Below, piece after piece: positions 38,131-47,186 of a stretch of 64,000 bases of DNA (positions within the stretch are counted from its first letter, which is position 1; each line of letters starts with the position of its first letter). A program made the position numbers and the translations under genes. The stretch is taken from positions 86,762 through 150,761 of the forward strand of contig CDMY01000244.1 in the NCBI GenBank assembly GCA_001179505.1, in the 5' to 3' direction. A model generated the notes under the pieces. That model was given only the letters and a program-made list of their open reading frames with translations. It was not told the DNA's origin and made no database searches. The DNA is from Vitrella brassicaformis CCMP3155 (Eukaryota > Protista > Chromerida).

Positions 38131-38160
38131 ACCCTTGACCCCAACCCTAACCCTAAGCCC
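38131..38160 (+). promoter_or_regulatory. Telomere-like CCCTAA motifs in a divergent promoter
   Basis: acccttgaccccaaccctaaccctaagccc lies between the ATGs at 38108 (-) and 38291 (+). Confidence 0.45.
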
Positions 38161-38290: not shown

Positions 38291-41200
38291 ATGCCCTACA
38301 CCAAGAACTTTGTTGGTGTTGCCGTCGAGGAGGGCGGCCGGAGGGTCGTCGTCACTGTCAACGATGAGACCACAGCGGCGGATGTGCTGAACAAAGTGAG
38401 TGACCGACCACAGGGACGGCCATCACAATTTGATGTGTTCATCTGCTTGTTGATTTGTGTGTGGCGACTCACTGCTGTGGTTTGGTTGGAGCAGGTCAAC
38501 TCGAAGATTGCGACCAACCCCGCCTTTCAGGCCAATCGCACCCAGCGGCTGGTCGTCGAGCACCTGCTTGTCAACGGCGACACCTTCGATGCCGACATCA
38601 ACATCAGAGAAGCATGGTGACGAGAACAGCACAACAGCAAAACGCACACGCCGCCCATTCTTCTCTGTTCCCCTCTTGCAGCGAGGATGGTGATGAGTTC
38701 GTTGCCGTTCCGGCATTCGTCCCGCCCCCCGCCCCACCACCAGCTGCGGCTGCCGCCTCAGCGGCACCCCTCCCCCGCGGGCAGAAGCGGCCCCACGAGA
38801 CCGACCGTGCAGACCAAGGAGATGACAACAGCCACCAAGAGGCAGGGCACAAGGCCAAGCAGCTCAAAGCGGCACCAGCTGCTGCGGCCGCTGCTGGTGG
38901 TGGTGGTGGTGCGGCTGCGGCTGGTGATGCGGGCGAGGGTGTTGGTGTGGGGGAGGGGAAGGGGCCAGAGATCGTCAAAATGGAAACAGACGAGGAGGAA
39001 ACAGAGGTGCACCCAACACACCATACGACAGGCGGCAGAGCTCATTCTGTGTGTGTCCATTTGTGTGTGTCAGGTGTCGTTCACGTACGCCACCCTCGAC
39101 CGCACCAACACCATCAGTGTGTCCAGCAAGGCCACGGTGGACGAGTTGAGGCAGCAGATCCTGGAGGAGGAGCTGGCCCTGCAGGACATCCCGGCGGCCG
39201 CCGCTGCCAGACCCACGCGCAAGAACAAGAAGACCGTCGACATCGTGCGGTCCAACGTGCGTGAGTTCGGAGCGTGTGGGGACCGTGACGGCGACTGTCG
39301 GTGGGCGGTGGGGGCCAAGATGGCCTATCGATTTGGCGAGGCGGACCTAGTCAATCGCACTGACTGTAAGGACGGCCACACAAGACGACACATGAAGATT
39401 GACCCACACACCGGGATGGCTGTGTGTGTGGTCCCTCCCCCTCATCAGTTGCTGGTAGTGATGACCGTTGTGGGTTCTGTCGTCAGCCGTTGGAGGCGGT
39501 GTGTCTGCGGTGCCCCCAGGGCGGCGACGACGGGGGTGCGGCAGGCGCGATGGCGTCCGGGTTGACGCTGGTGACGGTGGGCAGCGGGGAGGGGCCCAAG
39601 AAGCTGCCGGTGGCTGACGGCTGCCCCATCGTCAAGAACACATCATGCAACCACAAATTCCACTGTAAGGGGCAGGGGGGGGGGGGGGNNNNNNNNNNNN
39701 NNNNNNNNNNNNNNNNNNNNNNNNNNNNNNNNNNNNNNNNNNNNNNNNNNNNNNNNNNNNNNNNNNNNNNNNNNNNNNNNNNNNNNNNNNNNNNNNNNNN
39801 NNNNNNNNNNNNNNNNNNNNNNNNNNNNNNNNNNNNNNNNNNNNNNNNNNNNNNNNNNNNNNNNNNNNNNNNNNNNNNNNNNNNNNNNNNNNNNNNNNNN
39901 NNNNNNNNNNNNNNNNNNNNNNNNNNNNNNNNNNNNNNNNNNNNNNNNNNNNNNNNNNNNNNNNNNNNNNNNNNNNNNNNNNNNNNNNGGGGGGGGGGGG
40001 GGGGGGGGGCGACAGACATGCACTGACAGGCTAACATACACACATTGGTTCGCCTCTCTCTATCGCGTTTCAGGGCACTGCCTGTGCAGGCATTTCGAAG
40101 CGCGCATGAAGACGACCGGCCTGCGCACCTGCCCGTCGTGTCAGACCTACTGGCACTTCAGCCTGCCCCAGCCGCAGACCGCCACAGCTGCGGTCGGTGC
40201 CACCAGTTTCGACCTGGAGGTGTTCCTGCCGTCGTCGACAGTGTGTGGTGTGGGGGGCGGCCAGGCCGACTGGCAGCGGGCAGTCATCAGACTCAACAGC
40301 AACACCACACGCAAGTAGACATACACCATGGGTGGAGGAAGACGATGTGTGTACTGCATGTGTGGCGTGTGTGGTGTGGTGCAGACAGTTGTCGGAGGCG
40401 TTAGCTCGTGCACTTGGATTCGATGCCACCCAGTGGGGCCTGCGCGTCCTGCGCGTGGGACAGGTACACACATCGTCAATGCTCTCGCCCAGTGATGCAC
40501 AAACCTAACCTTCCTGTCTGCCTTGATGCGTGTGTGTCTGCAGTTGACCATCCCTCTCGGCTCGATTGCCCTGCACGAGTCTCTCGAGTTTGTGGGCATC
40601 AAGCTGCGGGCGATATCCCAGATCATCACCTACCAGCGGGGCGGCTCGGCGGCGACCCTGCCGTGCATCACGGCCACTCTGAGCACGGCTCGACACCACC
40701 CCCTGACGGTGAAGCTCAAGCTGCAGCTGCCTGTGGGCTACACCGTCAAGCAGGGCACACAGACGAGCCGACAGATGGAGTTGGTGGCGGCCAGTGACCA
40801 CAAGCTCAAGACGCTCAGCCACAGGATACACAAAGCATCAGGTGAGGGAGCCCATCCATAGTGGGGGCTGGAAAACGGGATCAGATGCGCTGCTCGTCTT
40901 GTGTGCCAGGCTTGTTGTCGGATCGTGTTCGCCTGTCGTTGCGTGAGGAGGGTGACAGCGGTGAGATGCGCCTTCGCGACCCCCGCTTGAGCGTGGTCGA
41001 CATCATCGCACTCGTGCTGGGCCGCAGCAGCACCGACGACAGCAACAAGACCATCAACCTGACCGTGAGTGAGGCATCGGCGGAGGATGCTCGTTTCCTG
41101 GTGGACATACTCAGGTGGGTTACAGACGTCAACCAAAGACACACACCGCCACACACGCCTTCCAATGGATGGCTTCCCTCCCTGTGTCTTCAGTGCTTAC

Positions 41201-42683
41201 CATCGCATGCCCTCGTACAGCGGCAAGTGGACAGTGCAGCAGCTCATCGACCACCTCAAGTACGTGCCGGCCCTCTCACCCGACGTGACGGCTTACGTCA
41301 ACGTCCGCCCCGCCATGGCCCTCGCCACCAGCACCAGCGAGGAGGACAGTGGCCCGGCAGAGGCGCCCGCGGCAGCAGCGGCCGCTGCTGCCGCTGCGCC
41401 AGCGGCGATGGACACGGAAAGCGATGGTAAGGTGATTGACGTCGACAGCGAAGACCGAGAGGATAGCGACGAGGACGACGGGGGCCAGGAGGGAAACGAA
41501 TGCCTCGATGTAGGGCAAATCACAAACACTGCTGGGGGATGACACGATGTTTTCCTGTGCGTCAGGCTGTGTTTGCGGCGTCGTCTCATTGGGGGCTGCC
41601 GATGAATGTCAAGAACAACGTCAAGAGGCAGACCTCCAAGGGCGTCAGTGACCTCCTGGCCTCCCTCTATGTGCTGGCCGAAAAGGCCGACCCGTCATCC
41701 GTCAACAAACTCACAGGTGCATGGGCAGGCGGGAGGGAGACACCAGCAGTTTGTGTCATCATCTGATGTCGATTCATCGGCTGTCTTTGTCCTGCAGGTC
41801 ACCTCCGTGCCGTCGTGTCCTTCCCGCCCGCTGTGTACGCCATGCGTGTGATCCTGTCGGCCAAGACTGGCTGTGCCAAGCAGATCGGACCGGCAGACAA
41901 GGCCCTCGTCGCCAGGGTCATGTTCAAGGTACGCGCCGAGGAGAGGTGTTGCCATTTCACCCCAGGGCCCACCCGTGCCTCGCTGTTTGTTTTGCAGTTG
42001 CTTCGCGAGATGGCGCCATCGACCATTCCCGACGAGCACTTGTTCGAGCACTCTCGAGTGCTGCTGAACGTCCTCGCCAGTCGCGCTCGCAGCCAGGATG
42101 CCGACACGGAGACCTACCGCAAGGTGCCCCTCACGTGCACCGCCTCCCACACCCGACTCACCCACCCATTCTACAGCGAAAGTGTCCAGGAATCCAACCT
42201 CACAGGTGGGCTGGGTGCATCAGGCGACACTAGACGAACAGTCGCAAGATGGCATCTGGTCTCTATATCCCCTTTTCAGTTCGCAATCGTCTGTTGAAGC
42301 TGTGCAATGGCCTCCGCGACGAGTCCATGACGTCGTCATCTTCGGCATCAGTGCCCTCGCCGTCCAAACACATGGCCCTCTTGCTGCAGGCGACCCCAAC
42401 CGGCTGCATGGAGGTGCTCGTGTGGCTGCCGCCCGAGGACGAGGCCATGGACGAGGGGCCCATGGCCGCGGCGTCGCGCAGCCTGTCGTACCAGTGGGCG
42501 ATGGTCAAGAAGGACGCCGCCAACCCGAAGGAGGTCAAGTGCCTGCAGCTCGTCAGTCCGGCCGCCCTGGGGCAGGCGCAAGCTCCCGCGCTGACCATCG
42601 ACGAGGACCTTCGCACGGCAGTGTACAGAGGTCGGTCACCGAGACGAAATACACACGACGGAAACGCTGCCAGAGGCCTTGCG

Positions 42684-42714
<31 letters not shown>

Positions 42715-45700
42715 AGGCATGGAGCCGTGTGGGAGTGGCCGCATGATGTACCGCCCCGTATTTGGGTGTGAGTCGGTGTTCGATTTGAGCGCCCTGGCCG
42801 ACAAGGTGTCGGGGTACATTGAAGAGATGGGCGAGGGCGAGCTGGCGGAGCAGCAGATCAACGAGGCCATCATCGTGGTGCTCGACTGCTCCACGTCAAT
42901 GTGTGAGCGCACCACGTTCGGCAAGGACGGGTACGATGAGGACTTCTGGAAGAAGAGGGAGGAGGAGGTCAAGCAAGGCTGGGACCACACCGATCCAGAG
43001 GACGACTCCCCGGTAGGCACACCGGGCAAAGATACTATGCGAGCTTCATGTATGAGGGCATTTTGTCTGCTGGTGTGGCCGCAGCAAGCTTTGGAGGCTG
43101 CATTGAAGAAGTTCCGCAACTACCCGGCCATACGGGAGATGCGCTCGTGTGTGGTGCCCCTCAGCCAGCGCAGACACATCACCGTCGAGGCCGCCGCCAA
43201 GCGGGTCATCCAGGAACTCTGCAAGCTCGTATGCCAACCGATATGACACAAGCAAAAGGCTAGCTGGCTGGCCGGCCCACACACACTCATCTGGCTGTGC
43301 TGTGCTGTGTTGGCGTGTGCAGAATCGCTTGGATGTCGCGTTGCAGACCAGCAGAAGAAGCTCCATATTCTATGGCGGGGTATGCACAGCTGTTTGTTCG
43401 CCTGTGCGATCCACACCCACCTGTGTGCCTGTCTGCCTGCAGGATCGGCGTGACAGGCTGTCTGACGAGAACACGACTCGAATGATGACCAAGTACACCG
43501 ACCGCTTCGTCGCTGCCCTGCTCGAGAAGGTGCCGCGCGATGGCCACCCGATCGTCCCCGACGACCCCAACGAACCGCCGCCAGAGTTCATCTGCCCCAT
43601 CACTTTCGACGTCATGAAAGTAACCTGCCACCAGCACACTCACCAAGTCAGAAGGGCCTCTCACCTTCTACTTGTGCTTCCCAGAACCCCGTCAAGGCCA
43701 GCGACGGAATCGTGTACGACCGCGAGGCCATCCAAAAGGTGAGTGCATCCGTCCATCAGGCAGGTGACACTGATGGGGCCGTGTGTGCTATGATGTGGTT
43801 TGTAATGGTGCAGTGGTGGGACTCGGGCAAGCGCACGTCTCCGCTGAACGGCCGCATGCTCCAGCACAGCATCTTCGAACCCCAAAATGAGCTCAAGGTG
43901 CGCTGTCTGACATGTATGTGTACCATCAAAGAATGGCCCCTGCATCCTGTCTGTCCTCCCTCCTTCCTTTCTATGTCAGGAGCGCATCACCAAGTGGCGG
44001 GGCGAGGAGCAGCCCGAGGCAGAGCCGGCAGCAGCCACCAGCCGCAGACCCCGTCACCACAGAGGAATCGGTGAGTGTTGTGTTGTGATAGGCACATCCC
44101 TTTTCCCTTCCGTGCCGTGCTGCAATCAATCTGCCTTGGTTGTCACACACACAGGGGGTGACGACGACGGATGGGACAGACTGACCCCTGCGCTTCTGAT
44201 GGTCAATCTCACGGATAGCCCTTATCGCGAGTATGTGCACTCACTCGTCCAGCCAGACACCAAGCCCAATATGTGCGTGGCGTGGATGGTGTATTGTGTG
44301 TGGTCAGCATGTGGCGGAACTTCCATGACGTCTTCCCCTTGGTTGTGCCATCGACTCTCACCGTGGTGGGTGCGCCCTTCATCGCACAACGGCAAGACGG
44401 GATTGCATGCATTTTGGTTTTTTCTTTCCCCTGTGTTGGCTCGTGTGTCAGGAGGGTCTTCGCTTTCGGCTCTGGGCCCATGCATCACATCTGGGCCTCT
44501 CCGAGGGGTATCTCCCCAGCCGCACCTGCCTCTGGGGGAACCTCGAGAACAACGGTCAGGATGTTTGATGACCACCGAACGGCCGCAGAGGCAGTGGATG
44601 AATGGGTCGGCTGTGCTGTGCTGTGCTCTGCCCTGCTGTGTTTTGAAGGGGGCGACAACTATAGGATCGGTAAGCGTCTGGACGACCGTCACGACCACGT
44701 CTGCTCAGTGACACACCACGGCCACCCTCAATCGCTCGACGCTCGCCGCACCAACTGGGGCGAGTTCCTCAACCAGCAGGCGGCCGGGTCGGTGTGGCCG
44801 TGCGAGCCAAGACCCATCAACGAGGAGTCACTCATGCGCAGACTCCACGTCGTGGCACAGCTATTCTCGGTAAGTGAGTATGCAAGCAGGTGGCTGGATG
44901 ACTGGGTCGCCTCTATTGCATGTCCCTCTGTCTCTCTTGCTCCCTCAGACGCTGCTGAATCGCATCGAGGCCTACGACACCCCCAACTGCCTGGGGCTCA
45001 TCCTCTTCTCTGACCGAACCAAAATCAGATACACATGCCAACTCAGTAAGCAAGACACACACCGCACAGCGACACCTACACATGGCCCCACCTTTCCCAA
45101 TCTGCTGTGGCGTGCTGTGCTGCAGGTCCGTATCTGGAGCGTTTCAGGCGTGCTGTTGACGACGCGACATGGGACGGCGAGACCGCCATCTTCGACGCCG
45201 TCAAGCGGGCCCGAGAGGAGCTGGTCAAGTGGAAGGCCGCCAAGCCCACGAGGGCGAAGGCCCAGCTGCGCATCATCGTCCTCAGCGACGGAGAGGACAG
45301 CCAATCGGAGACCACCTGGTTGGTACAAACTGCAGGACATCTGACACGTGGCCCGCAGTGGTGAGAGCATTGCTGACGTGTGGTCTGTGCAGGTTCTCAG
45401 AGGCGAAGGCGCTGCGTGAGAGCGATGTGCTGTGCGACGCCGTCATGATAGGAGGCAGAAACAACGACCAGGTCGGCCAGGAAGATACGGTTCTCTCGAC
45501 CAGAGGGTGAATTGTGTGTTCTGTGGTCAGTTGAAGTACCTGGCCAAGGCCACCGGCGGCTATGTGTTCAAGCCCGACTCGATCCGCAGTGCACTCAAAC
45601 TCTGCGAACTCGAAGTCATGCTCAGCGGTAATTAAGGCACTCAGTCAGGCCCTGCATTCAACAAAGCCCCATTGCTCATCCTCCCCGCCACCCTTGTGTG

Positions 45701-46987
45701 TGTGCAGCGTCCGAGCGGCCGCCCAACCTGCGGCCCGACTCCCTCCCCAACAGCGAGTTCATGTGTTCGGCGCTGCTCGGCAACTCCATCCGCTTTCCCA
45801 TCGACGTGTGCAACGACACCACCGTCCCTCCCCGCCGCCAGGTGGCCCAGCTGCAGGCCAACCAGACATTCCGCAGCCTCGCAGCCGCACTCCAGGCCAA
45901 CAAGCAAGCAGATGAAGACGGAGAGGGCGGCCAGGGGCAGGGAGAGGGGTCGCAGTGGGTGGGGGGCAGGCGCCAGAGCGCCCGCATAGCGTCGCATGGC
46001 CATGCGGCTCAAGAGGGAGGGGGTCAGGGGGCGGCACGTGTGTCGGGTGGTGGTGGTGAGGGCGGCGGTGGCAACCAGGAGCGCACTCGTCGCCTGATGC
46101 GTGAGATGCGGGGGCTGCTGCAGCATCCCCACCCGGCCGTTGACGTGTACCCATCGCAGACGGACATCGGCTTCTGGCGCATCGTCATGGTAATCTGGGC
46201 AACACAAAGACGCCGATGCCAGGGGCCGACGTGTGCAATGTGTGTGTGTGCAGGAGGGTCCTGACGGTACGGTGTACAAGGACGGCACGTGGCTGCTGTA
46301 CATGATCTTCCCCGCCGACTACCCCAACCGACCCCCCGAGCTGCGCTTCGAGACGCCCATCCAGCACGCCAACGTCAACGCATACGGCAAAATCTGCCAC
46401 CCCATACTCGGACGCGCCTACACCACCGACAGGTGGGGTAAATCACCACCGCACACTCATCAACCGTCCTCTCATGTGTGTCTGCACATTGGATGTGTGC
46501 AGTACTGTGAGAAGCATTCTGGAGAACGTCTACGGCCTGCTGCTCAACCCAGGTCAGACACACCCCAACAGTGTCGCGTTTCTTCGCTGCACACTCTCCC
46601 TCTCCCCTGCTGTGTGCATGTGTGTGTGTGTGTGTGTGTGGATTGCTGAAGACTACGTCGACCCCGTGGACAGCACCCTGGCCATGGCCTTCTACCAGGG
46701 GCAGGGTGACTACGAGGCGCGCATCGTTCAACACGTCCGACAACACGCCAGACGCACCAGACAGCAGTGGAAGAACACACTCACCGCAGAAGGTAGCTCA
46801 GCACTCGACCCACACACGCGCAAATACACAAAATACATGCTGCTGACTGAGTGTATCCCATGTGTGCTGTGCAGGTGGAGAGGCGCCCGGCGCTGGCGCT
46901 GGCGCTGGCGCTGCGGCTGCTGCAGCAGCTGCAGCTGGTGGTGGTGGTGATCCCTTGGCAGGCCGACGCACACGCCAGGGACGATGA
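38291..46987 (+). CDS. Giant ubiquitination enzyme: Ubl-like N-terminus, RBX1/APC11-type RING-H2, vWA domain with inserted U-box, C-terminal UBC (E2) domain
   Basis: RING-H2: DDRCGFCRQPLEAVCLRC...CPIVKNTSCNHKFHWHCLCRHF...RTCPSCQTYW. vWA MIDAS: IIVVLDCSTSM, with the rest later (GLILFSD, GETAIFDA, IIVLSDGED, AVMIGG, LKYLAKATGGYVFKP). U-box: [54 protein letters not shown]...EGPDGTVYKDGTWLLYMIFPADYPNRPPELRFETPIQHANVNAYGKICHPIL. Exon phases were traced by hand and are continuous. Confidence 0.85.
39689..39988. other. Assembly gap (300 N) flanked by poly-G runs, inside an intron
   Basis: A run of N with G homopolymers on both sides. The donor GTAAGG at 39665 and the acceptor at about 40072 join in phase. 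Confidence 0.99.
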
Positions 46988-47171: not shown

Positions 47172-47186
47172 AAAACCCTAAACCCC
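47172..47186 (+). promoter_or_regulatory. Telo-box-like AAACCCTAAACCC about 130 bp upstream of the LONRF-like ATG
   Basis: Read directly: caaaaccctaaacccc. The function is inferred. Confidence 0.45.

Follow-up and report, generated by a model that had tools for sequence, protein, structure and literature searches.

A resident Vitrella brassicaformis gene very probably encodes an R795-family protein, a candidate E2/E3 enzyme whose U-box and ubiquitin-like domain are predicted to lie within a split vWA domain

Can a cellular gene encode, in one polypeptide, a ubiquitin-conjugating enzyme (E2) together with the modules through which ubiquitin ligases (E3s) act on it, and is such a protein new? 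This question is raised by a gene at 38291–46987 on the forward strand of a 64,000-nucleotide (nt) stretch of DNA from Vitrella brassicaformis CCMP3155 (contig CDMY01000244.1), which is referred to here as the window. An original prediction, made from the letters alone, had read an N-terminal ubiquitin-like (Ubl) region, a RING-H2 of the RBX1/APC11 type, a U-box, a von Willebrand factor A (vWA) domain and a UBC (E2) domain in one frame, and had considered the full combination possibly undescribed. We are highly confident that Vitrella carries at this locus a resident nuclear gene, rich in introns and expressed, and that its product, by identity and architecture, is a member of the family of the Mimivirus protein R795. 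The best explanation as a whole, an R795-type gene with a nested architecture and an inferred E2/E3 mechanism, we consider likely.

The coding region forms one gene of 34 exons, which runs from the ATG at 38291 to the TGA at 46985–46987 and contains 33 GT..AG introns of 56–99 nt, apart from the gap-holding intron 5. The splice model was obtained by dynamic programming with a codon-usage score, followed by hand curation; exon 4, for instance, ends at 39365 and intron 4 occupies 39366–39448. Its translation is identical to P0064 (CEL96755.1; UniRef A0A0G4EK28), a protein of 1943 amino acids (aa) from Vitrella brassicaformis CCMP3155 that carries the automatic database name 'RING-type E3 ubiquitin transferase'. 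The search path led from exon 30, used in a HMMER scan of 1.84 billion representatives, to P0001, a near-copy of 1568 aa, and from a search with P0001 to P0064. All domain scores are based on a Pfam scan of the complete P0064; the U-box, being spread over three exons, was missed by exon-by-exon scans. As predicted, RING-H2, U-box, vWA and UBC are carried by one polypeptide, the last three with Pfam matches (U-box, VWA, UQ_con). From the N-terminus, Ubl-like segments are followed by a RING-H2 resembling that of RBX1, a region conserved in the family, the first strand of the vWA domain together with its metal ion-dependent adhesion site (MIDAS) motif, the U-box, a Ubl, the remaining vWA domain, a linker and the UBC core.

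Intron 5 (39665–40073) holds an assembly gap, with Ns at 39689–39988 between two G runs (poly-G tract). The codon split across it, T|GG, encodes Trp: the upstream exon closes with NHKFH and the single base T, and the downstream exon opens with GG and then HCLC. The RING-H2 core is read through uninterrupted as NHKFH-W-HC. At the locus of P0001 (L001:3001–9727 of contig CDMY01000158.1, a different contig of the same assembly), an ungapped intron of 91 nt is located at the identical split codon, and its first and last parts align to both flanks of the gap. Because this homologous intron is ungapped and the RING reads through, we regard the gap as a collapsed or unreadable G tract within the intron of an unbroken gene, in agreement with the original prediction. 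Judged from this sequence comparison, the true length of intron 5 is probably about 100 nt.

RNA mapping, in the form of short contigs, covered 40250–46249. Run X5 gave unspliced contigs and appears to be DNA; runs X6 and X7 gave spliced contigs. The 15 joints listed for X6 and X7 are all GT..AG and fall exactly at intron borders of the model, from 41717 to 45707 (8 more are unlisted), and the three introns of the U-box are crossed by such joints. A 1504-nt contig of X7 has pieces on exons 15, 16, 24 and 25 at a depth of 61.7, a value shared by all joints listed between 43011 and 44948, and appears to link the exon of the first vWA strand, via the U-box and Ubl exons, to the vWA domain. Contigs with a loose end at 46190 run on into the opening bases of exon 31, and the read depth of X7 is even over the 6 kb mapped. 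Within the range mapped, RNA thus speaks for splicing in the U-box and vWA parts of the gene and in its UBC part, up to the start of exon 31.

The combination of domains itself is on record. R795 of Mimivirus (Swiss-Prot Q5UQ40), a single product of 1297 aa, bears the reviewed name 'Probable bifunctional E2/E3 enzyme R795' and is also listed as 'RING-finger-containing E3 ubiquitin ligase [Acanthamoeba polyphaga mimivirus]', while a Terrestrivirus relative is named 'putative bifunctional E2/E3 enzyme [Terrestrivirus sp.]'. These viral relatives were found by a search with the metagenomic relative P0010. In the Mimivirus protein, Pfam places zf-rbx1 at 73–128 (60.5 bits), a ubiquitin-like domain at 211–274, a U-box at 682–747, VWA_2 at 917–1016 and UQ_con at 1137–1270, and the same order was found by Pfam in the Terrestrivirus protein and in three long metagenomic proteins. 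The best viral fold match in Foldseek is a Hokovirus protein of 1329 aa, which aligns over 990 columns (1e-52) in the part from the U-box to the UBC domain. In relatives from Cafeteria roenbergensis and the brown alga Nemacystus, only a U-box/vWA/UBC or vWA/UBC core was seen. U-box, vWA and UQ_con occur together in one cluster of the ESM Atlas with 458 members, and several AlphaFold DB clusters also match the family core. By sequence comparison, the full domain combination is not new: it is catalogued as R795 and present in giant viruses and many protists. The suggestion that it might be undescribed has to be given up, as the architecture proves to be largely widespread and recorded already.

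The Vitrella protein shares with this family a RING homologous to the viral ones, a U-box that follows the MIDAS strand and precedes the other vWA parts, a complete set of MIDAS residues, and a C-terminal UBC domain with H-x-N and Cys that is collinear with the vWA domain. In the largest ESM Atlas cluster, the commonest phylum listed is Chordata, so vertebrates may have members of the family as well. The immune-defence gene list of an eel transcriptome (PMC5560681) includes a gene that similarity-based annotation names R795, and this entry is the sole mention of the R795 name that our literature search found.

How the vWA domain is arranged around the U-box is the second question posed by the locus. 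The Pfam VWA match at 1460–1610 (38.1 bits) covers profile positions 18–167 only; in most family members, the match begins at about profile position 12–26, leaving the first strand and the D-x-S-x-S motif outside, with P0001 as the exception. A hydrophobic strand followed by D-x-S-x-S-M is located upstream of the U-box and/or the ubiquitin domain in every one of the 18 members that reach this region. In P0064, this strand with its MIDAS motif (42866–42901; aa 1064–1075) stands about 390 residues ahead of the remaining vWA domain (44837–45718; aa 1457–1626), which contributes Thr1519 and Asp1554 to the MIDAS. Between the two lie a canonical U-box (43578–44009; aa 1225–1294) with 68.3 bits in Pfam (cut-off 21.4) and a degenerate Ubl domain (44190–44680; aa ~1327–1404). 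Among solved structures, the U-box is closest to that of plant PUB12 (5.5e-14), and the two align in their contact motifs C-P-I and S-P-L. For the Ubl, the AlphaFold 2 (AF2) model gives a beta-grasp-like order at a predicted local distance difference test (pLDDT) score of 66–82. Its position is that where relatives carry a true ubiquitin domain, as P0010 and P0091 have a Pfam-significant ubiquitin domain between the U-box and the vWA domain, and P0008 and P0019, which lack a U-box, have one before the vWA domain.

The upstream strand is assigned to the vWA domain because P0001, AF2 modelling and a solved structure agree on it. P0001 is without the residues matching ~1054–1410 and shows a contiguous Pfam vWA over profile positions 2–166. 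In the AF2 model of P0064 residues 1000–1943 (mean pLDDT 71), the upstream strand has a pLDDT of ~90. The vWA domain of TFIIH p44 (8ebu_E), the best solved vWA match, aligns 183 residues of this model (Z 21.8) over model residues 61–627, that is, from the strand across the insert into the remainder. In the family alignment, the MIDAS residues (Asp, Ser, Ser, Thr and Asp) vary little or not at all, and Thr (T520), Asp (D555), G556 and D558 of the LSDGED segment are invariant. Ahead of the first strand lies a family-conserved region (41483–42856; aa ~725–1060), which had no Pfam family match in the scan of P0064; BLAST with residues 725–1090 matched P0019, P0043, P0058, P0066, P0083, P0084 and P0092. 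A vWA domain split in this way, with a U-box and a Ubl nested inside, is a predicted arrangement that we think is new as a structural observation, if modestly so, and our literature search found no paper describing the nesting of a U-box or Ubl in a vWA domain.

The RING-H2 (39469–40141; aa 289–376), which is split by intron 5, retains all 12 zinc-ligand positions of the three-zinc pattern of RBX1 (C289, C292, C300, C303, C340, C348, H350, H353, H355, C356, C373 and C376), with an insert of 36 residues between the fourth and fifth ligands, and the zf-rbx1 match extends over the full profile (aa 287–377). In BLAST, P0064 283–382 matched Terrestrivirus 89–180 at 5.6e-10 and the Mimivirus protein at 6.6e-5. 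The RING of the Mimivirus homologue matched human RBX1 at 3.8e-12; RBX1 and RBX2 make up its first 25 solved matches, and APC11 comes next. Since the Mimivirus RING matches RBX1 and the Vitrella RING matches that of Terrestrivirus, these sequence matches indicate that the RBX1-type assignment of the original prediction is right, but the RING is not an RBX1 orthologue: it misses the Pfam cut-offs and does not form a small stand-alone protein that has an N-terminal strand to contact cullin or APC2.

The N-terminal region (38291–39271) contains two possible beta-grasp, Ubl-like segments (aa 1–75 and 185–250) with low-complexity sequence between them. Pfam support is sub-threshold (OTU1_UBXL, 18 bits; ubiquitin, 13 bits), and the AF2 model of residues 1–600 shows a strand-strand-helix pattern at low confidence (pLDDT 44). 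Profile comparison in hhalign of the N-terminal segment with the true ubiquitin domains of relatives gave a probability of 2%. The N-terminal ubiquitin-like region is thus the weak part of the original prediction. About 30 residues before the RING, a Cys-rich segment (C252...C259; window 39275–39298, in exon 4) was observed; C259 is invariant in the family alignment, most relatives carry C-x-C there, and the segment may form an extra metal site.

The UBC (E2) core is located at 46091–46731 (aa 1751–1886; UQ_con, 96 bits) and is closest to UBE2A/Rad6 (4e-26), while its model superposes on UBE2D2 with a Z score of 22.7 and a root-mean-square deviation (rmsd) of 1.1 Å. No UBE2O or BIRC6 chain is present among the best 60 solved matches to this domain. 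The catalytic residue that had been predicted was confirmed as Cys1831, encoded by the TGC codon at 46395–46397 within HAN-VNAYGKIC, in which HAN (46365–46373) replaces the canonical HPN.

What could such a protein do? On established knowledge of E2s, RING/U-box E3s and vWA domains, we tentatively propose a self-contained E2/E3, a mechanism that seems possible without being probable. E1 would load ubiquitin onto Cys1831, and the U-box and/or the RBX1-like RING would bind the UBC domain, of the same chain or of a second copy, and favour ubiquitin discharge. The vWA metal site would bind a carboxylate or acidic group of the substrate or a partner. Because the U-box and Ubl are inserted directly after the MIDAS loop, the E2-activating module would be brought beside the vWA binding face, and the nested Ubl may occupy the ubiquitin-binding surface of the E2. 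It is a more doubtful possibility that nesting after the metal loop, rather than the set of domains, is the hallmark of the family from giant viruses to protists, that metal-dependent substrate capture could gate the built-in E2/E3, and that these proteins would form a third class of E2/E3 hybrid beside UBE2O and BIRC6.

Several observations weigh against the interpretation developed so far. The RING stays below both Pfam cut-offs (zf-ANAPC11, 23.3 bits against 25; zf-rbx1, 20.8 bits against 31). Exons 1–6 and a single full-length transcript were not seen directly among the RNA contigs of 40250–46249. The E2 loop that meets RINGs reads T-T-D, compared with S-P-A in UbcH5. Finally, a literature search (R795, vWA+UBC, mimivirus+U-box) found no functional study of any family member.

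The main rival is a two-E2 relay in place of a self-activating unit: like ordinary E3s, the protein would use its RING and U-box chiefly to attract free E2s in trans, and the UBC domain of the same chain would perform another step, such as chain extension or priming. It is suggested by the likeness of the U-box to plant PUB U-boxes solved with free UBC8-type E2s and by the contact loops of the cis E2, one with T-T-D for S-P-A and the other Rad6-like. Furthermore, the U-box is lost from P0001 although RING and UBC are retained, which implies that the modules are not interchangeable copies of one function. On the other hand, the fusion of all modules has been kept from giant viruses to protists, which argues for action in cis, and nothing favours trans partners. 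We regard the relay as unlikely, though a serious candidate.

If the UBC domain were a dead pseudo-E2, like a ubiquitin E2 variant (UEV), the protein would be only an E3 or a scaffold. This could be read from the missing canonical Pro, HPN having become HAN. However, the family E2 motif is H-x-N-[VI]-[NS]-x-x-G-x-[IV]-C, in which the middle residue is Cys (the commonest), Ala, Val or Pro, whereas 18 family members all have the His, the Asn and the Cys. Since the middle residue varies family-wide while the other three do not, HAN is, by the alignment, a family trait rather than a sign of decay. The close superposition on an active E2 fold (Z 22.7, rmsd 1.1 Å) also speaks against a pseudo-E2, which we therefore consider improbable.

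To return to the preferred reading of an R795-type Vitrella gene, its relatives within the genome comprise at least three paralogues of P0064, namely P0001, P0065 and P0088. P0001 is ~88% identical in the shared parts and keeps the RING and UBC but is without the U-box and Ubl. Its deletion of ~350 residues corresponds to the U-box and Ubl insert, with the junction inside one uninterrupted exon and the vWA domain contiguous again. Alternative splicing as the source of the insert-less form was rejected, as this junction falls within one exon, and at a different locus. RNA contigs with P0001-specific differences are present in run X7, so P0001 is expressed too. P0065 (1273 aa) and P0088 (1112 aa) lie on other Vitrella contigs. 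The former is 42% identical and ends inside the U-box; the latter is a C-terminal-type fragment that matches only from the nested Ubl into the vWA domain (P0064 residues 1276–1552). The two may together represent a third paralogue that assembly or gene calling has divided.

A maximum-likelihood tree of the vWA+UBC region groups the viral sequences in one clade (100/100) and the two Vitrella proteins in another, on a long branch; the deep nodes are unresolved. Transfer from virus to alga was rejected as a candidate, the tree setting the viral clade apart from Vitrella with its deep branches unresolved. The close architectural relatives in Mimivirus, Terrestrivirus and Hokovirus could also point to a recent giant-virus insertion in place of a host gene. 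This is contradicted by the 33 spliceosomal introns, at least 15 of them confirmed in RNA, by a gene G+C like that of the rest of the window, by the presence of at least three paralogues and by the separate position of the viral clade, so that such an insertion is very improbable. The G+C of the stretch is ~58%, with many short GT..AG introns, and the gene matches the remainder of the window in this respect. From the 33 introns and this host-like composition, the gene is resident and not a recent viral insert.

The least credible alternative, a gene-model artefact fusing neighbouring genes, for example across the gap, could draw on the lack of a single RNA contig spanning the gene and on exons 1–6 lying outside the RNA mapping, but it is already largely refuted: the exons on either side of the gap intron together complete the RING motif, this intron is ungapped in the paralogue, the X7 depth is even over the whole 6 kb, and the Mimivirus protein is recorded as a single product of 1297 aa with the same domain order.

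Comparison with known systems places the protein more precisely. It resembles the R795, Terrestrivirus and Hokovirus proteins in domain set and order, in a Pfam vWA match that also lacks the first strand in the viruses, and in collinear BLAST and Foldseek matches. In contrast to R795, it has ~650 more residues, among them additional Ubl-like and low-complexity segments at the N-terminus and the 36-residue RING insert; its gene has 33 introns, the identity to the viral proteins is ~24–47% in aligned parts, and the viral sequences form a separate clade. UBE2O and BIRC6 have in common with it a UBC core embedded in a very large polypeptide that also contains parts for substrate binding, a resemblance that is functional only. 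To our knowledge, both are without a RING or U-box, and we know of no vWA domain in them. The Vitrella RING shares the complete three-zinc RING-H2 ligand pattern with RBX1, RBX2 and APC11, but these are small stand-alone proteins that bind cullins or APC2, whereas the Vitrella RING is internal (289–376) in a chain of 1943 aa. UBE2O and BIRC6 have been called the only two E2s known to work without an E3 (PMC12818219).

TFIIH p44/Ssl1 (vWA and zinc fingers) and plant RGLG (vWA and RING) likewise couple a vWA domain to zinc modules of the ubiquitin-ligase type, and Ssl1-type vWA clusters are neighbours in the ESM Atlas. However, they have neither a UBC domain nor a U-box and Ubl inserted into their vWA domain. 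UBOX5/UIP5 combines a RING with a U-box, and Mb_UBOXa of Monosiga, called an ancient protist gene, a U-box with a vWA domain (Marin 2010, PMC3087547). Unlike for the Vitrella protein, no UBC domain is reported for either.

Some smaller features of the locus were also observed. AAG takes the place of the usual CAG at the ends of two introns, at window 44646–44648 and 46649–46651, and the acceptor at 44648 is confirmed by spliced RNA contigs. (GT)n microsatellites are located within introns 14 and 32 (42688–42714 and 46618–46640); positions 42678–42724 were skipped as a repeat in the read mapping. Short telomere-like repeats flank the gene, at 38143–38156 (aaccctaaccctaa), directly upstream of the start codon, and at ~47174–47186 (aaaccctaaaccc), ~190 bases past the stop.

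Combined, the striking architecture at this locus is real but not new. In this family, one chain unites an E2 with E2-activating modules of two kinds and with a domain for metal-dependent binding, and its cataloguing goes back to the Mimivirus genome. Vitrella provides cellular members that are expressed, including a natural variant without the U-box and Ubl, and the observation of a split vWA domain provides a concrete structural hypothesis.

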